Part shown: positions 5,157-20,585 of the stretch, piece after piece
Layout of the letters: every line of letters starts with the position of its first letter
Numbering within the stretch: position 1 is the first letter of the stretch
Assembly (NCBI GenBank): GCA_038496445.1
Contig: JALMLS010000225.1
Location: forward strand, 62,001-126,000
Direction: 5' to 3'
DNA length: 64,000 nucleotides
Source: Trichosphaerium sp. ATCC 40318
Taxonomy: Eukaryota; Protista; Tubulinea
Position numbers and translations under genes: made by a program
Notes under the pieces: generated by a model
The model's database searches: none
What the model was told of the DNA's origin: nothing
What the model saw: only the letters and a program-made list of their open reading frames with translations

Positions 5157-5182
5157 GATACTACACTTGATCTTAGCCAAAA
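5157..5182 (-). repeat. Orphan 26-bp copy of U2 snRNA nt 15-40
   Basis: gatactacacttgatcttagccaaaa is the exact reverse complement of 7436..7461. Confidence 0.95.
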
Positions 5183-7368: not shown

Positions 7369-7421
7369 ACAATAAATTTAATTACTAGGCTGATAAATCA
7401 TGTTCAACGGCACCCAATAAG
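7369..7421 (+). promoter_or_regulatory. U2 gene proximal upstream region
   Basis: 53 bp identical to the upstream region of the other U2 gene (reverse complement of 17087..17139); the match stops beyond that. Confidence 0.75.
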
Positions 7422-7608
7422 TAACCTTCTCGGCCTTTTGGCTAAGATCAAGTGTAGTATCTGTTCTATTCAGTTTAATCTTGAATGGGGGACGAAATCA
7501 CAAGATTAAGCGAATTTTTTCCGGGGGCAGGGGATTGTCGGACTGGCTTGCCTTTCCACCCCTGCAATGATCTGTCAGGCCTTACACTACCCGCCAGATG
7601 AGGTCAAC
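7422..7608 (+). ncRNA. U2: U2 snRNA, variant copy with stem-loop IIb disrupted
   Basis: Hallmark 5' sequence CTTCTCGGCCTTTTGGCTAAGATCAAGTGTAGTATCTGTTCT with branch-point pairing GTAGTA, stem IIa, Sm-like AATTTTTT, stems III and IV. Has gggggacgaaatcac where the other copies have gggggacgaatgtcccccac. Confidence 0.93.
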
Positions 7609-8194
7609 TTTTTTTCTGAAATAAATAATTGTGGTTGTTTGAGGCTGTCTTCCGTACATTTATTTTCCAACTCACGTGTTATATTGTGCGATCTGTTTAG
7701 AACCATGGACTCTTTTCGCAGCCTCTATCCAGGTACATTAGTTTTCTGGGTTGTGTACCTCTACTATCGCGTATCAGCGCTTTTGTACGCGTTGGTAAAC
7801 CTTTTTCGCCAGTTGATGCTAACTATCTGCAGAAACCCTGTTTACGCGTCTAGTTTGGTTCACCAGACATTCAAAGGCGTTTTAGCATTTTTGTACGTTA
7901 AAACACATATTTTTCGCGATAATGTACTCACTACCGTTTAGACTTACGCTGTTTACCCACAGCGTATCACAGCAACCAGAGACGGCCTCCCAGGTACAAC
8001 TTTTGGTAATTTTTTTTTTTTTTGCACTGCACAAAACGCGTTTGGCTGAAAACACGTATATGGCCATCCCTACGCGCTGCAATCCTGTAGCGTGATTTGT
8101 GGCGTTTTGGTTGTGGACATTCATTTTTTTGTAACCTCAACCAAAAAGCGCTTTAATCGCAACTACAAGTGATTTTAACACACTATATTTTAAA

Positions 8195-11100
8195 TTGGAC
8201 ACTTACTTGGATTTTAGGAAGATTCTCACTTTTGTTTGGTGTTGGTCATGTCACGATACACACATCTTGCTCGGTGCTTGGACAATTGCTGATTTGTTGT
8301 TAGCAAAGTGGGTTGCAAGGTGTCATGTTGTGATAAACCGTAGCAAGAAACAGGGAGAAGAGTGTAACCACCAAATCGTATTAAAAAGTACTTGCGACTT
8401 TCATTTTTCTGTAAGACTAGCTTTATTTGTAGAAACTCCAACAACTGAAGCTCCTACTATAGATTCACCAAGTACAGAAGCACCAACCACTGAAGCGCCA
8501 ACTATAGAAGCATCAACCTCTACCACTGAAGCGTGTACAACTGCAGCACCAACTCCTACAACTCCAACGATTGATGCGCCACTATAGCCAAGGCACCAAC
8601 AATTGATGCTCCTAGCACCAACTACAGATGCACCAATAACTGCTCCTTCTACCACAAACGCATCAATAACTGAAGCACCAACAACTGATACTCCAACTAC
8701 AGATGCTCCTACCAGAAGCGCCAATTACTTTGGCGCCTACAACTGAGGTTCCACAACAGAAGCGCCTACTGCAAGTGCTCCAACAACTGAAGCACAACTA
8801 AGGTACCTACAACCGATGCTCCTACAACTGAACTGCCAACAACTGACACACCAACTACAGATGTTCCAAGCACCGAATTACCAACAGCAGAAGCTCCAAC
8901 TACAGGAGCTCCTATGACTGAGGTTGCTGCTACAGATGCACCTGATCACCGAAGTTCCAACCACAGAAGCTCCCACAACTGAAGCGCCAACAACTACTGA
9001 AACACCTACAACTGCAATCCCTACAACACTGAGGCGTCAACTACATTAGCGCCTACGACAGTAGTGCCTACCACAGAAGCTCCAACCACTGAGGTTCCAA
9101 CTACTGAAGCTGCAACTACAGAGGCGCCTACACCTGAACCTCCAACTACGGAACCTCTAACAACTGAAGCACAACTACTGGCGCTCCAACTACAGAAGCA
9201 CCTACAACGGTAGCGCTAACAACTGAACACCAATACATTTGAACAACTGACACTCCTACAACTGAAGCACCTGCTACTGAAGCGCCTACTACTGAAGCAC
9301 CAGCTACAAAGCTCCTACAACTGATGGTCCAACAACAGTAGCTCCAAACATGAGGCGCCAACAACTGCATCACCAACAACTGCAACGCCTACTACAAACG
9401 CATTTACTACAGACACCAACTACAGATGCACCAACTACTGAATCGCCTACTACAGCAGCTCCAGGAACTGAAGCACCAACAACTAAAGCTCCTACAGCAG
9501 TAGCGCCTACTACGTAGGTTCCTACTACTGATGCTCCTACAACTGGTACTTTTTATTTTGATTTTTATGTGGACTAACTTACCTTACAGAGTCTCCTACA
9601 ACTGAGGCACCAACAACAGATGCTCCTACAACTGATGGTCCAACAACAGTAGCTCCATGAGGCGCCAATGACTGCAACACCAACAACTGCAACGCCTACT
9701 ACAAACGCATTTCTACAGACACCAACTACAGATGCACCAACTACTGAATCGCCTACTACAGCTCCAGCAACTGAAGCACCAACAACTAAAGCTCCTACAA
9801 CAGTAGCGCCTACTACTGAAGCGCCTACTACATAGGTTCCTACTGCTGATACTCCTACAACTGGTACTTTTTATTTTGATTTTTATGTGGACTAACTTAC
9901 CTTACAGAGTCTCCTACAACTGAGGCGCCAACAACAGATGCTCCTACCATAGAAACGGCAACTACTTTGGCGCTTACTGAAGTTTCCACAACAGAGGCGC
10001 CTACTACAAGCGCTCCAACAGCACCTACAACTGACGCTCCAACAACTACAGCACCAACTACAGACTCCAACAACAGTAGCTCCAACCACAAGGCGCCAAC
10101 GACTGCAACACCAACTCCTACAACTCCAATGATTGATGCGCCACTGAAGCTCCTATAGCCAAGGCACCAACAACTGATGCTCCTACTACAGGGGCACCAT
10201 CTGCTGGGGCTCCAACTACAGATGCTCCAAAAAACTGCTCCTACATCAATAACTGAAGCGCCAACAACTGATACTCCAACTACAGATGCTCCTACCAGAA
10301 GCGCCAACTACTTTGGCAGCTACAACTGAGGTTCCAACAACAGAGGCGCCTACTACAAGTGCTCCAACAACTGAAGCACCTACAACAGAGGCTCCAACAA
10401 CCATGGAGGCGCCAACCACTGCAACGCCTACTACAGTGGCACCTACTACAGACACACCAACGACAGAGGCTCCAACTACAGAACCTCATGCTGCTACAAC
10501 TGAACTGCCAACAACTGACGCACCAACTACAGATGCTCCAACTACAGGAGCACCTACGACTGAGATTGCTGCTACAGATGCACGTGATCACCAAAGCTCC
10601 AACCACAGAAGCTCCCACAACTGAAGCGCCAACAACTACTGAAGCACCTACAACTGCAATCCCTCAACACTGAGGTGTCAACTACATTAGCGCCTACGAC
10701 AGTAGTGCCTACCACAGAAGCTCCAACCACTGAGGTTCCAACTACTGAAGCTGCAACTACAGAGGCGCCTACACCTGAACCTCCAACTACGGAACCTCCA
10801 ACACCTGAAGCACAACTACTGATGCTCCAACTACAGAAGCACCTACAACAGAAGCGCCAACAACTGAAAACCAAATATAGTGACTTGAACAACTGAAGCA
10901 CCTGAAGCGCCAACTACAAAGCTCCTACAACTGAGGGTCCAACAACAGTAGCTCCAACCATGAGGCACCAATGACTGCAACGCCTACTATTGTGGCGCCT
11001 ACTACAGACACACCAACGACAGAGCCTCCACCTATCGATGCAGCACCAACTACAGATACCCCTACAACTGGTACTTTTTATTTTGATTTTTATGTGGACT

Positions 11101-13090
11101 AACTTCCCTTACAGAGTCTCCTACAACTGAGGCACCAACAACAGGTGCTCCTACCATAGAAACGGCAACTACTTTGGCGCTTACTGAGGTTTCCACAACA
11201 GAGACGCCTACTACAAGCGCACCAACAGCACCTACAACTGACGCTCCAACAACTACAGCACCAACTACAGACTCCAACAACAGTAGCTCCAACAACGGAG
11301 GCGCCAACCACTGCAACGCCTACTATTGTGGCGCCTACTACAGACACACCAACAACAGAGCCTCCAACTACTGATGCAGCACCAACTACAGATACTCCTA
11401 CACCTGAAGCGCCTACAATGGAAACACCAACGACAGAAGCACCAACAACTGACACACCAAGTACATAAGCACCTACAACTGTAGCACCAAAACCAGTACT
11501 TTGTATTTTACTTTCTAAAGCAACTAACTTTCTTTGTAGAGGCACCAACTACAGAGGTCCAACAACTGCTCCCGCAACAGAAGCCAACCACTGATGGACC
11601 AACAGCCAAAGCACCAACTACTGAAGCCCCTACTACAGAGTCGCCAACAAGTGAACCTCCAACTACAGCGGCTCCTACAACTGATGCACCAACTGAAGCT
11701 CCAACCACTGCACCTTCAACTATAGCTCCAACTACTGAAGCTCCTACTACAAAGGCGCCTACAACTGAAGTTCCAACAACTGAAACTCCTACTACTGGAG
11801 CACCAACTACAGAGGCGCCAACCACTGAAGTACCAACTACAGCTTCTCCAACCACTGAAGCTCCTACAACTGATGCACCAACTGAAGCTCCAACCACTGC
11901 ACCTTCAACTATAGCTCCAACTACTGAAGCTCCTACTACAAAGGCGCCTACAACTGAAGCACCAACTACATAGACTCCAACCGCTGGTGCCCCTACAACT
12001 GAAGTGCCTACTACAGCAACAGCAGCCAACTACAATGCCACCAGTGACGCTTCCGCCAACTGGTACCTCCAACAACTGACACGCCAACTACTGAAGCTCC
12101 AACAACAGAGGCACCTACAACAGAAGCACCAACAACTGAAGCGCCAACCACTGAAGCATCAACTACTGTTGTTCCTATAACTGCTGCTACAACCAATACT
12201 CCAACAACTGTAGCACCAACAACCGATGCACCTACAACTGAACCAACAACAGGCACTCCAACAACGTAAGCTCCAACCACAGAAGCTCCTTCGACAGATG
12301 CCCAACTACTGAATCTCCAACATCTGGTATGCCAACAACCAAAGCACCAACAACTGAAGCGCCAACTGCAGCGCCTACAAACATAGTCTACAGAAGCGCC
12401 AACTGAAGTTCCAACAACTGAAACTCCTACTACTACTCTGAAGCTCCTACCACTGAAGTGCCTACATCTGCACCTAATACTGAATCCCCACTGGTATACC
12501 AACTACAGAGGCTTCAACCACCGAGGCCTCAACTGGTGCACCAACAACTAAAGCGCCAACAACACAGGCGCGTAGTGGTGACAACTGAAGCTCCAACTCC
12601 TACCACCAATCCACCCACAACCGATTATTCAACAACTGATGCCCAACAACTGGTACCAACACTGCGAGCGCTAAAAAACTAAATAGATTTAACCACGTTT
12701 AGATTGTGATGAGCCAAATGGCGATGGTACTTTTACTGCCTCTTCAGGATATTAGCATAACCATAAATTAAAGGCAAGGTTATCCACTACACTTTCTTTA
12801 TTGTAATGCTTTATTTAGGATAATTTGTTAAATAATAAACTTTCTTGTTTAAGAACACTGTGCATCTGTTTCTTGTCATTGGCGCATATAGCCATGACAT
12901 TCTTTACAAACTACTGCCAATGACAACAGATCCTTTAATAACACTAACACCTACAACAATAGCTCAAACGACAACATATCCTCCAACAACACTACCACCA
13001 GCTACTTTGTCTTCTACAATGATAAATCCTTAAATAGCGCTACCTTCAAAAGCGCCAGTACCAACAACAACAAACTCACCTAGTGTACAC
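8195..13090 (+). pseudogene. Mucin-like (A)PTTE-repeat surface protein with degenerate CUB-like domain, frame-disrupted
   Basis: About 4.3 kb of ~15-nt PTTEA units with many indels and in-frame stops. A short intron (gtacttttt...ctaacttaccttacag) is repeated. CUB-like remnant CDEPNGDGTFTASSGY...CHWRI at ~12700..12890. Start codon uncertain. Confidence 0.75.
8432..12660 (+). repeat. Coding minisatellite (consensus ~gcNccWacWacWgaR) with higher-order duplications
   Basis: Blocks ~8930-9180 and ~10570-10830 are near copies, as are ~9850-10110 and ~11060-11320. Confidence 0.9.
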
Positions 13091-13139
13091 AAACAAAAAA
13101 CAGTCGGACACTAACTCAACTTTATTTAGGTTTTCTGAA

Positions 13140-15162
13140 TTACAAAAAACGCGCAAAATCTTTTGCCAAAAACTTTGCTCTTCCAGGTCGTGGCTTGTAT
13201 GTTTTCGTCATTTCTCTCTTCCACAGGGACTTTAGTGCAATTTTGCGTCTAAGCGACTTCTTTTTGCGGTCATACATTCCTTGTAACTGACGCTTCTTGC
13301 ATAGGCTCTCCTCTTCATTTTCTGGATCCACTTTATGCGATTCAAATGCTAGACGCTCATCTGCGCTCTTTACTAACACTTCAGCTTTCAGGGATGGATG
13401 TTGTGTGAGCAACTGCTTGTAGTATGCGTTCACAACCTTGCGAATTTCATTTTGTTGGTAAGAACTCCATTTGTTAAATTCTTCAATTTTTTTGTTGTTT
13501 GTTGTGTTGCGCACCAAAGTAGGGTTGTTGTTGTAAAACTGTTCAACAGCACGTTCTTTCTCCTTTCTTAGTCTTTGATATTTTTCACAGAAATCAAAAC
13601 GGTCATGTTCTACAGACGGAGGAACAGTGCGATCATTGGGCGTTGGTGTTTCTGTAGGCGCAAAAATATCACCAATACAACTGAGCCATGTCTGCTGAAC
13701 ATCCTCGCCTGTTATGGCGCTAGTGTGATTGTAGACAATTTTAGTGACAAAATTGACATAACTACATAGGTGTGAGCACTTGTGGCAGTGAATACGTGGA
13801 GAAAAAGCAAAGGTAAACCAAAAACAAAAAAAAAAATGGTACTTACGCTAATACAACTGGAGAATCCTTTTTCCAACCACCAAGCTCTGCTAATTGTGTG
13901 TAGTCGATGTTGGAACCCCCTTTACTCAGTACAGTGATTACATACTGAGTTGCCATACCTCTGCAGCTAGAGTGGGCGGTGATTTGGCCTTTCTTGTATC
14001 CAGCAGCCTGACCACGCTTGGACATCATGTTTCCGAGTCCTTGTGCCGTGATTGGCTTGGTAGGAAAGTACAAGTTGTTTGTAGCCGCACACCACAATGG
14101 CAACTTCTTGTGTGTCTCTTTCACCTAGTAGAAGCAGTTCAGTACAGGATGAAAGAAACGTGTAACCCCACAAAAAAAGAAGTAAAAAAAGAAGGTACCT
14201 TGAATGTGTGCGTTTTTGGATCATACATCTCCAAAGCTTCTCTGTCATGTAGGTACAGCGCCAAAGCTGCCAGTGGGTTGATATCAGCAAACTCCTCGCT
14301 TTCAGTGCTATCCACAAGCCAAGTTTTGTGACACTGCTCAAAGATCTTATCTTTTTCAATGTAGACTGCCAATTTCGCGTTACCAGCCACGTGAATTATT
14401 GAGAGATCTTCCAAGCGTATTTTGTGGTGTGAATCGGCACGTTTACCCAAAAACATGTTTAGGATAAGGTATGCACGATCACGGATATTAATCGGAGTTG
14501 TTGGGGGTATATGTGCCAATATTTTGCGCAAAACAGGTATAACAATTGGCACCTTTTCTAAGAAATCTTTTTGTGTTTCTGGGTTCTTTTTTTCGCATTG
14601 CGCTAGTACTACGTTTGCTACACAAAAATTAGACTCAATGTATCAAAGTACAAAAGAAAAATCCAAAACCACGTGATTATGGCGTACTTTCTGCATGAAA
14701 TGCTTCATCAAGAGGTGGCTGTCCTTGAAGGCGTGACTCTCGCAGTAAAGATCTCAAGTAAGTTTTTCTACTGTTGTTGCGATAACCCATCTTTGTTAGC
14801 GCAACAATCCATTCCTTCACAAAATCCACCTGAAGAGGGAATATGGAAGTCTCTTCTGGGTGATAAAACCTACAAAAAGTGAGTCAATTCTAAGAACAGT
14901 ACTTGGTTACTCTAGCTAACATATGCTCTAATAATGCGTACTTTAGGAACAACGTGTAATTGGCAGATGCCCGTGCTGCTAAAACAATGCTGCCATTCTC
15001 AAAAGGTTTGCGCTCTAGATCCTGTACTGTGCTGACAATCTCCTCTATAGGAACAGTTTTGGCCATTTCTTGAAAAGCGGCTTCCAAACCTTTGCCACTA
15101 AAACGCCGCTTATATCCTTTCCTTGGTTTAAGACCATCCAGGTCAGTCTTTCTTTTACTCAT
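13140..15162 (-). CDS. Intron-containing tyrosine recombinase (phage-integrase superfamily), 573 aa
   Basis: Exons 15162-14942, 14869-14688, 14617-14199, 14124-13847 and 13761-13140 are joined by GT-AG introns and give 1722 nt in frame. Core-binding-like FPLQVDFVKEWIVALTKMGY..SRKTYLRSL; box I RDRAYLILNMFLGKRADS; box II TAHSSCRGMAT; LAELGGWKKDSPVVLAY with the Trp and catalytic Tyr. Confidence 0.9.
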
Positions 15163-15259
15163 CTGGTTGAAAGCTAACCAAGCGCTATATAACTTCTGTT
15201 GACTGTGTTGACTGCCGTTGAGTCAAGGGCAGTAAGAAAGTGTTGTCCTTTTGGTGTTT

Positions 15260-15416
15260 TCTGTTCTATTCAGTTTAATCTCTGAATGGGGGACGAATGT
15301 CCCCCACAAGATTAAGCGAATTTTTTCCGGGGGCAGGGGATTGTCGGACTGGCTTGCCTTTCCACCCCTGCAATGATCTGTCAGGCCTTACACTACCCGC
15401 CAGATGAGGTCAACCC
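15260..15416 (+). pseudogene. U2: 5'-truncated U2 snRNA (nt 39 to end)
   Basis: Begins at TCTGTTCTATTCAG and matches the intact U2 copy from there. No promoter or nt 1-38 upstream. Confidence 0.93.
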
Positions 15417-15524
15417 CTTCTCTAAACATCAAAGAAAAACAATAACCACCTTCAGACTGGGAAAGCACTCTCTATCTTAGGGTATAAATTTACCAAAAAA
15501 TTTTTACAAGTCAAAAATTTCCGT

Positions 15525-15550
15525 GATACTACACCTGATCTTAGCCAAAA
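15525..15550 (-). repeat. 26-bp copy of U2 nt 15-40 (one mismatch), antisense to and ~110 bp downstream of the U2 3' end
   Basis: gatactacacctgatcttagccaaaa. Confidence 0.93.
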
Positions 15551-16757
15551 CAAAAATCACACTTTTTCTTGTTTTCCGTTTCCAATCGCGTCATTTCAAA
15601 GCCACAGCTTAATGCTGAGAATAGAACCGTCGTACTTAAAACATCAGTTTTATTCGTTTGCTGTCTATGACCTTAAGTGATATCAAAATTTGCAATGTCA
15701 GTTTCAGTAGGCAAATGGCAAGATGATCGCAGTATTTACCCACTTACACGGTACGATCAAACATTATTCTTCCATGAGCTAAAAGCAAATTAAAATGAAT
15801 CGATGGCCTGCAAAGCTATCTCATTACTACTGAATGGTGGTATGAATGCCTCAAACACTGTTTGCGTATGTTTGCTTCAAAAAAATTAACTCACGTGTAT
15901 AACGTACTAGCGCTACACTTGCGCCTACCCCACGCTAACAGAAGCGCTCTCGCAGCATTCAAACAGAAAAGCAGTGATAATAACATGAAAACCTCCCCAA
16001 AACACTATCAACGCTGCTGTAGGCTTTGCAAACGCAGCCAGGTGTCAATTTATATGTAAATAAAAATGTTTAGTCTCGTTTTGTTAAATCACGTGTTTGA
16101 AACGGTTGGGTTCCCCAGGCAGTCATGAGGGTAGACTGCCCTTAAAAATATGAGATTTGTAAGACCTGTCAGAAGTGTCAAATCCGTCAATCTGTCATTG
16201 GTCAGATTGGGCAGAAACTGGTTTTTTTTTGTTAAAAGTCAGCCTGGCTTAAAACTTCAAACGACAATAAGTTAAACTGCAAAACTGTAAATGTATAACC
16301 TTTGTGTAACATGCGTAAGCATGTAGAACTTTAACAAAGCATGTGGTGCCATGGTAAAACGCGATTACGGATTTTGTTGCTGAGTGTCTTAGCCGTCGGT
16401 TTATGGCTACAGATTTTTGTGGATTTAAATATAGCTTCCATATCAGCGTTTTCATGGAACAGTTGCTCTCACGCATTCCATTCTTTAGACCAATAAATGA
16501 GCATCATCTTCTGAAACCTTTCGTAGTTATAATCGTGTACAATAAAACATTCAATTTCGTTGATTGATCTTTACCAACTTGCGTGAGGGTTTTGGGTCTT
16601 AGAAGGCCAGAGTGTTACAAGTACTGGCATAGGAGATGATGTGTACATATCCTAACAGTTAAAAGGGTTCATGGCAATAAATTAGGTGTTTGAAGCGTAG
16701 TGATTGTGTTGTGTGAATACGAAGGGAAACGGAAAACAAGAAAAAGTGTGATTTTTG

Positions 16758-16783
16758 TTTTGGCTAAGATCAGGTGTAGTATC
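16758..16783 (+). repeat. 26-bp copy of U2 nt 15-40 (one mismatch), downstream of and antisense to the intact U2 gene
   Basis: ttttggctaagatcaggtgtagtatc. Confidence 0.93.
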
Positions 16784-16891
16784 ACGGAAATTTTTGACTT
16801 GTAAAAATTTTTTGGTAAATTTATACCCTAAGACAGAGAGTGCTTTCCCAGTCTGAATGTGGTTATTGTTTTTCTTTGATGTTTAGAGAAG

Positions 16892-17086
16892 GGGTTGACC
16901 TCATCTGGCGGGTAGTGTAAGGCCTGACAGATCATTGCAGGGGTGGAAAGGCAAGCCAGTCCGACAATCCCCTGCCCCCGGAAAAAATTCGCTTAATCTT
17001 GTGGGGGACATTCGTCCCCCATTCAGAGATTAAACTGAATAGAACAGATACTACACTTGATCTTAGCCAAAAGGCCGAGAAGGTTA
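16892..17086 (-). ncRNA. U2: U2 snRNA, intact
   Basis: Full U2 5' hallmark, stem IIa attcag/ctgaat, stem IIb gggggac/gtccccc, Sm-like site, stem III gcagggg/cccctgc and stem IV. Confidence 0.97.
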
Positions 17087-17759
17087 CTTATTGGGTGCCG
17101 TTGAACATGATTTATCAGCCTAGTAATTAAATTTATTGTGGTTTTTTTTCTTTGCTTACAACGTCGCTATAAAAATGTACCACAGCGATTGTACGCGCTA
17201 TTATGGGTTCAAACTGCGTTTATGTTGAGAACAATTGGATAATGACTATCTTTCTTAAAACGCACATTGAATCGCTTGTACGCCTCAAAGTCACGATAAA
17301 AGACATAGAAACAAGTTCGACGAAGTATCTGCTGTACGGCGCTAAAAATTTTCTGGTAGCGATCTTGTATCTCCTAAACGCGCTTTTTCAGTGTTACCAA
17401 GGTACTACGCACTCGAAAAAAAAAAGCATTGAGAATGCTCCAAATTTCAAAGTCAAAAATAGCGAAAATCAGAAGAACCTTTATTTTTATCCAGTAAACA
17501 ATTCAGCCCTGCAATAGCCCAAGTGTTATCCAGTGGAGTATGTCGTTGCGGCGATAACGTGTACCAAACGTAAAAAACATTCGTCCGCTGAAGTACAGCT
17601 CCAATAAACAGTACCTGCACCGCCTTCGTAGCTAATAACCTCGCCTGTATGTTACTCGCGCTCACAGTGATACACTCACGAAAATAAGGTTCGCAATAGC
17701 CCTGTTTGCTTGTTGTGTTGTGGGTGGACTTCAACAACTAATAATCAAGCGAGATGGGT

Positions 17760-18342
17760 TTATTTATTCAACGTTTTCTTTAGTTCTTCTAGCGTACACG
17801 CGTTTTGTATTAGTGCAGTCTGAAGCAAATCGGCAGTAGTTGATCTTGTATCAAAACATTTTGCAACAAAGTCAATCACCTCCTCAGAACAAGAGTACAA
17901 CTGCGAAAGCGCTTTGGTTCGATCAAATACACGCCCAACAGCCATCTCTACAGCTACGAATCCAATTATCACATTTGTAGTTGAAGTTAATACCAATGAA
18001 ATGCTCTGTGGTTTGTGCGTCAATTGAACGCGCCCATCTTTATGCACAATAACGTCATCTGATTGAACGTTTTTGTGCAATCTGTATTTGTGTAGATACA
18101 AGTTGAGATAGTATTGACTTTAGGATAGCAGCCACGGTGGGAAGATTCATATCAGTGCGTGCAAGTAGTTTGAGGGTTGTAGAGCGAAATAGTTTGGTTG
18201 ACCGCTTTTTGAAATATAGTCGTATACGCTTTACTTCTTTGAGGGAGAACGTGCTTGAGGATTGAGCGATCATGTGATGTTGTGCGAGTTGTGTACTTAA
18301 AAAAAAAGGCATGAACGTTGAGTGATCATGATTGAGTTGCAA
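17760..18342 (-). pseudogene. Divergent protein-kinase-fold remnant with a frameshift near 18100
   Basis: VAAILKSILSQL/YLHKYRLHKNVQSDDVIVHKDGRVQL, VAVEMAVG and SEEVIDFVAKCFD.RSTTADLLQ resemble kinase subdomains VI-XI. Catalytic HRD and DFG are absent. Confidence 0.6.
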
Positions 18343-18505
18343 AAGGTTTCAAACCTATTTGATTGATCACTCGTACTTAGTAATAACGCTTTTGGTGTAT
18401 TAACTTGACAGTTGAGTGCAGTTCAATCATTGTGATTTCGACAAATCCTGCCTACATTTCTCGTGTCAGTCACGTAATTTATTTATCATCATTGAAATTG
18501 TCGCC

Positions 18506-20585
18506 ATGTCTTTCATTGGGGTATTAGCTGTTTTAAGACATTATTTAACGTATTGTAGACTATTGGAGAGGGTTTATCTCGTTCTACAGACGATAGCCCA
18601 ATAGATATTGAGGAAAACCTTACAGGTTGGCGAAATAAAGCAAATAACGCAGTGCTGACTATTTAGAATGGCTATTGGCAAGGAGAAAGATACCCAAAAC
18701 GTGGAGTAAGCAATTACGTGAGCTACAAAGTAAACAAGTACGCTTTACAACCCAATTAGTTGTTTTGTCGATTTAATCCATCAATAAAAAGCAAAGCGTG
18801 GTTACATTTGAACCATACGCTACAATACGTTGTTGCGATGGCTATCGGATGTTTTTGCTAATTTATGCCAGGACGCACTTATACGCGACCAGATGCCTTC
18901 CAATACTTACCTGCAAGATTTAGTAAAGCAACAACGTAAGCTAAGGGCGAGATAAGGGGTTAAAAAATGACACATTGTAGACAACATTTTGACATATTTT
19001 GATATTTTGGATATTATTTCGAACATTATTGACAGTGGTGAAGACTCGTCGAAAAACTTACTTGGCTATTACAACTCCAAAATTCTTTGTGTACGTTTAC
19101 AGTACATTCAGTCACGGTTGACTCCTAGCAAGCAAACCATGTTATTTAAACTCCTTGAACATTTCAAATATGTATTCACTTCTAGTAGAAATGGCAAGGT
19201 ATCCAAACGGCATATGAAAGAAACAACTTGCATTTGGCTCACTTGGCCAAGTTGCTACATGATACGATAGATAATAAGTTGTACGGTTTTTTTAATAATC
19301 ACTTGATCTTACTCTTCTAGACCTTCGTTGCTAGAAGAAAAGAATAAATTAAAAAGACAATTAGCTTATATACATAAGAGAAAAACATCAGCACTGGATA
19401 CAAAACGTCGCATTGAGGATATTCTAAAGTCAAGATTTACAGAATACGGGATTGTTGTATGTAACACATTTTATTTGTGCTAAAGCTTGTTAGGGTGCGA
19501 ATGTTCGGCAAGAGTTATTGGGTAAAGTATTAAAAGAGCTTCCCGACTTATGTGATGAGATTATGCAGCAATTACAACAAAGCCACATTGGCGAAGCCGT
19601 AGATCATTACTCACGATTTGTTGATCACATGGCGTTGAAACATGTAACTGCCCTTGGCACAAAATCTAACGGTGTAAATGTTAGCGGTATGTTATACGCA
19701 TAAACAGAGGCTCACTAGGAGTAGAGATCATGAGTACTTTATGCAAAGTAAGAAAAGAAGGAAATTTTATAACTAGCAAAACTAATTTCTCGGATTCAAA
19801 CTTCGGTATAGAGATAGTTGGTGGGGGAGAAGTTAACACAAAACCATCTAGCGATGGCATTGATTGGGGTGAGTAGTCATATGTTTTTGCAGTTAACGTG
19901 TACAAGGCGATTTTGACATTACTGGTGACACCATTGTTGTATCATCGAGTAGAGTGATTCACACCTACACTTCCGAGGAAATTAAACAGTTAAAAAATAG
20001 CGCTTTATGTAACAGAAAAACGAGAGGAGAAATATTAGCTAATTTAAACGAACTGCTTGGATTTTTGAAACAACGTGCTGCAGATAAATCAGTCGAAGAG
20101 AATCTGTCCATTCAACAGCTTCAAAATGCGCCCTGGGAGGTTCACAAGCACGATGCAATGAGTAACATACAACGATTAATTAAAGAATTAAACCACACTG
20201 TGAACAAGATAAACAGCACTGAGGCACAACTTTTATTCAATTTAGCAACTTCGGAAAGGTACGCATCTAGATCGCCATACACTTATTCTGTAGTATCTTA
20301 GATAGAATATGTAGTGATGTAGAAATACATCGCACTCGCATACGCCGTTTAGAAAAACTACATGATGAGGAGAGTTTAGTAGCCAGTAAGGTTTCCAAAA
20401 TGATAGAAATCACACTACAGGAACTACAAGACCACTGGCGAGCGCGTGTGAGCGTTTTAAAGACAAAAACAGGTGTGAATTCGAACAAACTGTAAACTGA
20501 TACAGTTGTAGAACGTATGTTGGCTGTACAACATAGTAGAAACGTGACAGTGCACAATATAGCAGAAAAACTGCTAACCAAGTGA
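18506..20585 (+). CDS. CDK5RAP3: CDK5RAP3/C53-like protein (multi-exon)
   Basis: EWLLARRKIPKTW, YFDILDII...SKNLLGYYNS..W..I..AYERNNLHLA, EYGIVGANVRQELL...ELP and IDWG match the C53 family. Confidence 0.85.

Follow-up and report, generated by a model that had tools for sequence, protein, structure and literature searches.

A spliced, tyrosine recombinase-like gene at the edge of a 7.8-kb unit that splits a U2 snRNA gene in Trichosphaerium

How does a gene for U2 small nuclear RNA (snRNA) come to be split by 7.8 kb of other DNA, and what does the five-exon gene at the edge of that DNA have to do with it? The question is raised by a stretch of 64,000 nucleotides (nt) from Trichosphaerium sp. ATCC 40318 (assembly GCA_038496445.1, contig JALMLS010000225.1, positions 62,001 to 126,000), here called the window, whose contig is referred to below as C169. 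An initial annotation, made from the letters of the window, had picked out a tyrosine recombinase gene at 13140-15162. Our analysis indicates that the five exons probably specify the integrase of a DNA element of low copy number, similar to Cryptons or Starships, whose insertion into U2 snRNA genes is site-specific, and it supports a DNA-type element rather than a DIRS retroelement.

Rfam reports three U2 genes in the window; in that at 15239-15419, true U2 sequence starts at nt 39. The 329-bp arm at 15260-15588 is 99% complementary to positions 16720-17048 of an intact, inverted U2 gene, while the first 60 nt that this arm lacks are found, together with the promoter, at 7369-7481. Because the start of the arm lies 7.8 kb away, the locus is an inverted U2 pair split by an insert at 7460-15259, with the following features:

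7460-15259, no strand: inserted unit of 7.8 kb within the U2 gene, delimited by TCTGTTCTAT as a direct repeat
7460-7469, plus strand: left core TCTGTTCTAT, inside a hybrid U2 at 7422-7613
15260-15269, plus strand: right core TCTGTTCTAT, U2 nt 39-48, from which the host U2 runs on to 15419
15163-15259, minus strand: 97-bp right end of the unit, upstream of the ATG, its last 21 bp (15239-15259) resembling the U2 5' part (CCTTTTGG..)

In the window copy the repeat extends over 22 nt at 100% identity and is followed by a U2 3' part with deletions of 1 nt and 5 nt. For the hybrid U2 at 7422-7613 the score is 122.7 bits, where intact copies reach 150.9 bits; one base is lost in the loop after nt 60, the 5-nt deletion removes the 3' strand of the next stem-loop, and the 3' end is a T-run, not the usual 3' flank. 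The unit consists of this U2 3' part, followed by unique sequence of about 0.8 kb, then an array of 4.3 kb and a spacer, and last the recombinase gene, which reads inward from an ATG placed 97 bp from the right end. The array (8400-12700) has a 15-bp period and would encode Thr/Pro-rich, mucin-like peptides; its open frame hops among all three frames, no plus-strand open reading frame exceeds about 160 amino acids (aa), and the array is either a decayed cargo gene or a minisatellite. These contents make up all of the 7.8 kb and include no reverse transcriptase, RNase H or gag, and the ends of the unit show no poly(A), long terminal repeat (LTR) or inverted terminal repeat (ITR), all inverted repeats of the unit being U2-derived. 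Among the RVT_1 (reverse transcriptase) matches listed, which are 150 of 205 candidates genome-wide, the nearest on C169 lies about 51 kb away and outside the window, and none falls on C395 or C358, the contigs that carry the related genes described below. The initial annotation had noted that no reverse transcriptase, RNase H or gag was nearby and had argued for a DNA-type element rather than a DIRS retroelement; the first statement holds, and the second is supported, also by the 10-bp U2 repeat, by paralogous empty sites and by a paralogue in a similar element inside a tRNA-Lys gene.

The gene itself lies on the minus strand and is laid out as follows, the copies being those on C395 and the paralogue that on C358:

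15162-14942, minus strand: exon 1, 221 nt, ATG at 15162, ending in phase 2
14870-14941, minus strand: intron 1, 72 nt, GTACGC..TGTAG, acceptor kept among the copies
14869-14688, minus strand: exon 2, 182 nt, candidate core-binding helices
14618-14687, minus strand: intron 2, 70 nt, starting GTACGC, phase 1, position and phase common to the C358 paralogue
14617-14199, minus strand: exon 3, 419 nt, with box I, the candidate first catalytic arginine (Arg-I, in G-K-R) and the beta-hairpin Lys region
14125-14198, minus strand: intron 3, 74 nt, GTACCT..CTAG, not in the paralogue
14124-13847, minus strand: exon 4, 278 nt, with box II, H-S-S-C-R-G-M-A-T, and G-G-W
13965-13963, minus strand: TGC (Cys) codon aligned to XerD Arg247, CGC (Arg) in both C395 copies
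13762-13846, minus strand: intron 4, 85 nt, GTAAGT..TGTAG
13761-13140, minus strand: exon 5, 622 nt including the stop, with the candidate catalytic Tyr, two helices, a Pro/Thr linker and a 159-aa basic helical tail

When the reverse complement is read, the exons add up to 1722 nt, or 573 codons plus TAA, with running phases of 2, 1, 0, 2 and 0, and each of the five exons, translated singly, is open throughout in the predicted frame. All four introns follow GT..(T/C)AG and have a G+C content of 0.33-0.36, compared with 0.41-0.47 in the exons. Exon 4 ends in GC, the first T of exon 5 completes an Ala codon and TAT (Tyr) comes next, exactly as had been annotated, and an AATAAA stands 14 nt past the stop, at 13126-13121. 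The gene occurs three times in the genome (70 Mb in 642 contigs), once in the window and twice on contig C395. Aligned, the three copies differ at 10 exon positions in 1722 nt, nine of which are third codon positions (binomial p = 3.6e-4) and eight of which are synonymous; the third-position changes sit in the predicted frames of exons 1 to 4, with exon 1 alone contributing three synonymous changes and one Q-to-H, at third positions. The introns carry six substitutions over 301 bases as well as the sole indel among the three copies, of 2 nt in intron 1 (Fisher p = 0.008), the GT and AG splice dinucleotides are intact in every copy, and no copy has a frameshift. A phase-1 intron at the boundary of exons 2 and 3 is also found in the 35%-identical paralogue. 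Since third-position bias, intron excess, kept splice sites and an intron common to the paralogue all point the same way, the gene model is real and under purifying selection; exon arithmetic, splice sites and copy comparison thus agree with the annotated frame of 573 aa joined by four canonical introns.

What kind of protein does this frame encode? Sequence searches and profile alignments were made exon by exon, and the division of the domain over three exons lowers every score. With an alignment of XerD, XerC, lambda Int and Cre, taken from annotated records, as the hhalign reference, exon 3 together with the paralogue aligned onto box I (P = 4.9e-4; exon 3 alone, P = 0.0034) and exon 4 together with the paralogue onto box II (P = 9e-4; exon 4 alone, P = 0.0029). 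Exon 2 gave a marginal match (P = 0.048) to XerD residues 10-48, the first core-binding helices, and the matches of exons 2, 3 and 4 are collinear. In a rank test over the 189 stop-to-stop open frames of at least 70 aa in the six frames of the window, the exon 3 frame came first (26.1, aligned to XerD 118-206) and the exon 4 frame second (24.5, XerD 208-276), the next best frame reaching 17.7. Box I reads R-D-R-A-Y-L-I-L-N-M-F-L-G-K-R in exon 3 and R-D-K-A-M-L-E-V-L-Y-A-T-G-L-R in XerD, which places R59 of exon 3 (in G-K-R) opposite XerD R148; in exon 4, H51 stands opposite H244, A-T opposite A251-T252 and W84 (in G-G-W) opposite H270. The candidate catalytic Tyr, placed by spacing and outside the hhalign alignment, stands at W+10, where exon 5 has its first full codon; the paralogue likewise has a Tyr at W+10. 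A third His or Trp followed about 9-13 residues later by the Tyr nucleophile is therefore present, in W84 and the Tyr at W+10.

Look-alikes of the single exons fall in the same place. In the Atlas language-model comparison, those look-alikes of exon 4 that have a Pfam family belong to PF00589 clusters (0.95-0.96), and those of exon 3 to NDC10_II, DUF3504, DUF3435 and PF00589 (0.95-0.97). These four families are of the recombinase type, and NDC10_II, DUF3504 and DUF3435 are related to Cryptons. One match was obtained for exon 4 among 38,880 PHROG families, to an integrase (E = 0.019). No recombinase-family match in Pfam or NCBIfam was found for any single exon at E <= 1, and sub-threshold exon matches to HSNSD-CE, Nipped-B_C, uS11m, prohibitin and TetR were judged to be chance. 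Pattern scans of metagenome and viral contigs with exon 4 and the paralogue returned nothing, and the sole phmmer match of exon 3, a 3272-aa galectin-repeat protein, was spurious. The protein thus appears to be a very divergent, Crypton-like tyrosine recombinase in which exons 3 and 4 would carry boxes I and II in order and in register. We regard a tyrosine-recombinase ancestry of the five-exon gene as very likely, the assignment as such being probable and drawn from sub-threshold statistics. The core-binding and catalytic domains that had been annotated fare unequally: the catalytic domain is upheld by profile alignments and rank tests, with no curated family or fold match, and the core-binding domain is hinted at by the match of exon 2, in the right place.

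Would such an enzyme be active? Box II reads H-S-S-C-R in the window copy, H-S-S-R-R in both C395 copies and K-G-A-R-R in the paralogue. The box II His of the window gene is present opposite XerD H244, and the residue opposite XerD R247, the second catalytic arginine (Arg-II), is Cys in the window copy and Arg in the C395 copies, as it is in the paralogue. The window copy may accordingly be catalytically impaired or inactive. Because the residue right after the Arg-II position is Arg in all copies, some residual activity is conceivable. The Cys-bearing copy may also rely on its Arg-bearing sister copies acting in trans. The gene can be called full-length in the sense of a complete frame of 573 codons; the initial annotation had missed the Cys at the arginine of the HxxR motif, and an active enzyme is not implied. 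The natural Arg/Cys difference between copies is a ready-made activity comparison.

That the unit is a discrete insertion is borne out by uninterrupted sites and by an insertion elsewhere. An uninterrupted U2 gene that carries both flanks of the window locus is found on contig C13, and C9 holds the uninterrupted locus that matches the C395 copies. On C395 the unit lies in another U2 locus, the flanks of which, beyond the U2 repeat, do not match those of the window; the copies of the unit are 98.5-99.4% identical, and both ends of the unit occur exactly three times in the genome, always together. The left junction on C395 runs through U2 nt 1-48 and continues into 115 nt of unrelated sequence, to which Rfam still gives a score as a mini-U2; the repeat is thus a sharp one of 10 bp. 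Copy B on C395 is joined to a mini-U2 at a CCTTTTGG microhomology, and the right end there has a fuller U2 5' likeness than the window copy. The two copies on this contig (4474-14195 and 26351-16618) form a 9.7-kb inverted duplication of 99.65% identity that includes 1.2 kb of flank. The contig as a whole (26.8 kb) is a near-palindrome around a 2.4-kb centre, either a fold-back duplication or an assembly artefact.

A second small RNA gene is split in the same manner. On contig C358, a 6.44-kb insert (13052-19499) cuts a tRNA-Lys(CUU) gene after its T-stem and contains the multi-exon paralogue, which shares 35% identity across exon 4 (genome-wide E = 1.6e-8), has no intron 3 and places its final intron five codons before that of the window gene. 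The 3' acceptor strand, discriminator base and T-run of the tRNA lie 6.44 kb from its 5' part, and a 7-bp direct repeat, CCCTCGT, stands at both junctions (L007 4053-4059 and L008 493-499). The split gene was located by Rfam and a pattern search and had been missed by ARAGORN. The strongest argument from context, both for site-specific integration and against simple homology as the means of spread, is that related recombinases reside in two elements, each of which interrupts a small RNA gene. A further spliced gene, at C12:509133-510629 (L012 877-2373), carries the classic motifs Y-T-G-H-S-L-R-H-T-A-T and G-G-W..Y, and a PF00589 match (E = 2.4e-4) falls on its middle exon; the gene probably belongs to an element of the Crypton type or derives from one. 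As a bridge to the window exons this gene was rejected, BLASTP returning nothing significant.

The comparison of the two split genes also bears on the part of the protein that lies beyond the catalytic core. Exon 5 begins with two helices that complete the catalytic domain, followed by a Pro/Thr-rich linker and then by the tail, residues 48-206 of the exon (159 aa), which has an isoelectric point of 9.9 and 38 Lys plus Arg. In a single-sequence AlphaFold model the tail is predicted to be all-helical, with five long helices and a confidence (pLDDT) of 70-86 over residues 60-120. The initial annotation had described a basic helical extension of some 200 aa; the basic character and the predicted helices are confirmed, and the length is corrected to about 160 aa. 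It had also suggested searching with the C-terminal region separately. These searches found no relatives of exon 5 in Pfam, NCBIfam, PHROGs, a word-index search or the rest of the genome; the Pfam scan gave no GCR1_C and a sole match to Nipped-B_C (E = 0.099), and Foldseek with the exon 5 model returned generic helical bundles only (E > 0.9). BLASTP of exons 2 and 5 against the N-terminal and Tyr exons of the paralogue gave no alignment, so that the paralogue combines a conserved catalytic core with N- and C-terminal regions unrelated to those of the window gene. The initial annotation had proposed that the extension could contribute to U2 target recognition, for which these unrelated outer regions are the one indirect sign. 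Judged from the sequences, they would fit target-specific modules, with the N-terminal domain implicated equally.

The U2 genes around these insertions have some peculiarities of their own. At least 33 U2-like matches occur in the genome, among them several divergent variants of 200-219 nt scoring 60-115 bits (including L017 3451-3618 and L018 3067-3277), and the U2 gene family is unusually large and heterogeneous. Low-scoring matches on C265 and C378, considered as U2 genes cut by the retrotransposon Utopia, were rejected as divergent full-length U2 variants. Mini-U2 genes, at C9:630735-630829 (equal to L009 4736-4830) and on C155 (L010 5990-6110), have a normal U2 promoter and nt 1-59, then GATCTTAGCC, which is complementary to nt 19-28, and nothing further of U2; each stands head-to-head with a full U2. 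Orphan U2 pieces of 24-26 nt (nt 15-40), all ending at nt 40, lie in the window at 5157-5182 (minus strand), 15525-15548 (minus strand) and 16760-16783 (plus strand), about 100 nt downstream of U2 genes and on the opposite strand. Because they recur in the U2 3' flanks on C9, C155 and C13, these pieces belong to the normal U2 repeat unit and not to the element. Their end point, nt 40, adjoins the integration core.

How might the element have entered the U2 gene? We propose that it excises as a circle whose joined ends would form a U2-like attachment site, since the ends of the unit resemble U2 on both sides of the core. The recombinase would then pair the site on the circle with a U2 gene and exchange strands within TCTGTTCTAT. 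This would leave at the left junction a hybrid U2, in which the promoter and nt 1-48 come from the host and the U2 3' part from the element itself, and at the right junction a promoterless U2 3' part.

Several points weigh against this interpretation. The element is known from genome sequence alone, and its excision and movement are proposals. The window copy appears to lack the canonical Arg-II. The C395 copies count as one, being an inverted duplication with flank included, and the number of independent insertion loci is thus two, not three. Every exon, taken singly, falls short of the Pfam, NCBIfam and PDB sequence thresholds, the hhalign probabilities are 10-32%, and exon 3 found no relatives in an exhaustive phmmer search against 1.84 billion cluster representatives. 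The AlphaFold model of the 148-aa catalytic exon of the paralogue, built on three alignment rows, has a pLDDT of 48 and is unusable for a fold comparison. Last, the long U2 homology on both sides of the unit would also allow it to spread by gene conversion.

This last possibility deserves to be spelled out. Gene conversion driven by homology, or ectopic recombination, could carry the unit from one U2 locus to another by way of the U2 sequence at either side, with the recombinase gene as a passenger or a decaying relic that does not power the movement. U2 loci share at least 90 bp (promoter and nt 1-48) and at least 330 bp (nt 39-192 and the 3' flank) around the unit, the left junction of the window copy keeps the U2 3' part almost entire, which is what a crossover between homologous sequences leaves, the microhomology joining C395 copy B to a mini-U2 fits, and so does the Cys at Arg-II in the window copy. 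A relic, however, agrees poorly with purifying selection on a gene in which eight of ten exon changes are synonymous and none shifts the frame; moreover, at the C395 junction a sharply bounded repeat of 10 bp gives way to unrelated sequence, and the 7-bp repeat of the tRNA-Lys element is too short for homologous recombination. We therefore consider this route unlikely. It is highly unlikely, in our judgement, that the gene descends from a recombinase but is now a domesticated or host gene, which adjoins U2 genes in a 7.8-kb unit spread by ordinary segmental duplication. Its low copy number (three), the replaced catalytic Arg in the window copy and the existence of Crypton-derived host genes (PMC3212892) would suit this reading, and coding constraint suits a host function equally well; yet at two loci with unmatched flanks the unit breaks a conserved RNA gene, and the nucleotide is identical in both, uninterrupted paralogous sites exist, the paralogue has the same split-gene layout in tRNA-Lys, and the catalytic residues are intact in the sister copies.

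That the exons might not be a tyrosine recombinase at all, their motif likeness being due to chance and their function another one, is suggested by the lack of a curated family or PDB sequence match, the lack of fold evidence and those same hhalign probabilities. We think it very improbable, as two separate exons top the profile scores of the window, collinear and with catalytic residues in register, the language-model look-alikes of both lie in the recombinase clan, and the genomic context is that of an integrase. Least credible of all is a retroelement origin, in which the junction at U2 nt 38/39 was made by a non-LTR retrotransposon of the Utopia or Keno type, or the unit is a remnant of the DIRS/Ngaro type. 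Utopia and Keno do leave a downstream U2 that resumes at nt 39, as here, Utopia is found in Amoebozoa (PMC4640811), and this genome has at least 150 RVT_1 matches. Against it, the 7.8 kb leave no room for reverse transcriptase, RNase H, endonuclease or gag, of the RVT_1 matches listed not one lies on C395 or C358 or, on C169, closer than 50 kb to the gene, poly(A), LTR or ITR ends are lacking, and no other U2 match in the genome is cut at nt 39.

With a site-specifically integrating DNA element as the preferred interpretation, to which known system would it belong? Cryptons are DNA transposons that encode a recombinase only, have intron-containing genes and are flanked by terminal direct repeats of 4-6 bp, regarded as the substrate of recombination; past the recombinase, the proteins of CryptonF and CryptonS continue in a C-terminal region, and some such regions bind DNA (PMC3212892). 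The unit resembles them in having a tyrosine recombinase as its sole enzyme, no reverse transcriptase, no LTRs or terminal inverted repeats (TIRs), short terminal direct repeats and introns, as well as a C-terminal region after the recombinase, as in CryptonF and CryptonS, and DUF3504, DUF3435 and NDC10_II look-alikes of exon 3. It differs in its target, as no snRNA or tRNA target of a Crypton is reported in PMC3212892, in the length of its repeat (10 bp, up to 22-36 bp being U2-like, versus 4-6 bp) and in about 5 kb of other DNA that include the U2 3' part; in addition, the window gene has no GCR1_C and no sequence-level match to any Crypton family, and the host is an amoeba-like protist. Starships, giant relatives of Cryptons in the Pezizomycotina, have a leading recombinase gene, termini homologous to the target, and cargo (PMC10104507, PMC11162782), with 23% of their insertion sites in 5S ribosomal DNA (rDNA) (PMC11162782). 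Here too the recombinase gene lies at the very edge and faces inward, the termini are homologous to the target and there is cargo, and many Starship families are likewise specialised for a multicopy small RNA gene, 5S rDNA, with direct repeats of 6-16 bp internal to the gene. Starships, however, are fungal, measure tens to hundreds of kb and have a DUF3435 captain, whereas the unit measures 7.8 kb, targets U2 and has a paralogue that matches DUF3435 at E = 0.18 only, so that it does not qualify as one; and Starship insertions in 5S are described as likely to disrupt the gene, whereas the unit leaves a hybrid U2 at its left junction.

Other elements share the target or the design. Utopia and Keno have the same target gene and the same downstream-junction nucleotide as the unit, but they use reverse transcription and an endonuclease, whereas the unit has no reverse transcriptase and its only enzyme gene is tyrosine recombinase-like; the common site would be convergence. 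Dada DNA elements strictly target multicopy small RNA genes, namely U6, U1 and tRNA genes (PMC3706591). The unit, as a DNA element aimed at a multicopy small RNA gene, resembles them. Dada elements have a DDE-type transposase, TIRs and target-site duplications, unlike the unit with its tyrosine recombinase, and U2 is not known to be among their targets. In bacteria, prophages and integrative elements at tRNA genes place the integrase next to the attachment (att) site, share with the RNA gene a core of identical sequence and carry a replacement part of the gene. All three habits, an integrase by the att site, a core inside an RNA gene and a replacement gene part, recur in the unit; the eukaryotic host, the spliced integrase gene, the snRNA target and the deletions in the replacement U2 part set it apart. 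DIRS, Ngaro, PAT and VIPER elements are marked by a reverse transcriptase and RNase H beside the recombinase and by ITRs or split direct repeats; the unit contains no reverse transcriptase or RNase H. By analogy, the unit would work in the manner of a Starship of small size or of a Crypton with cargo, its att design being prophage-like, and it is not a demonstrable member of any named clade.

Taken further, the two split genes raise the possibility of a previously undescribed family of eukaryotic, prophage-style integrative elements, in which spliced recombinases would have diversified to small RNA genes (U2 nt 39-48 and tRNA-Lys nt 61-67), with att sites that mimic the target and a hybrid RNA gene left behind, and in which the U2 lineage would have converged on the nucleotide used by Utopia and Keno. 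We put this forward tentatively, as a proposal that falls somewhat short of being probable. Strict targeting of multicopy small RNA genes is already known from non-LTR retrotransposons, from the DDE-type Dada elements and, in fungi, from Starships at 5S rDNA. An element that has a tyrosine recombinase and U2 as its target would add a mechanistically different case, outside fungi and with a sister lineage in tRNA-Lys. If true, U2 nt 38-48 would be a recurrent safe harbour for mobile DNA, and the carriage of a replacement for part of the target gene, a habit like that of prophages, would extend to eukaryotes. It would also make available a compact recombinase with a long, conserved natural target that is present in nearly all eukaryotes, which is of relevance to targeted integration.

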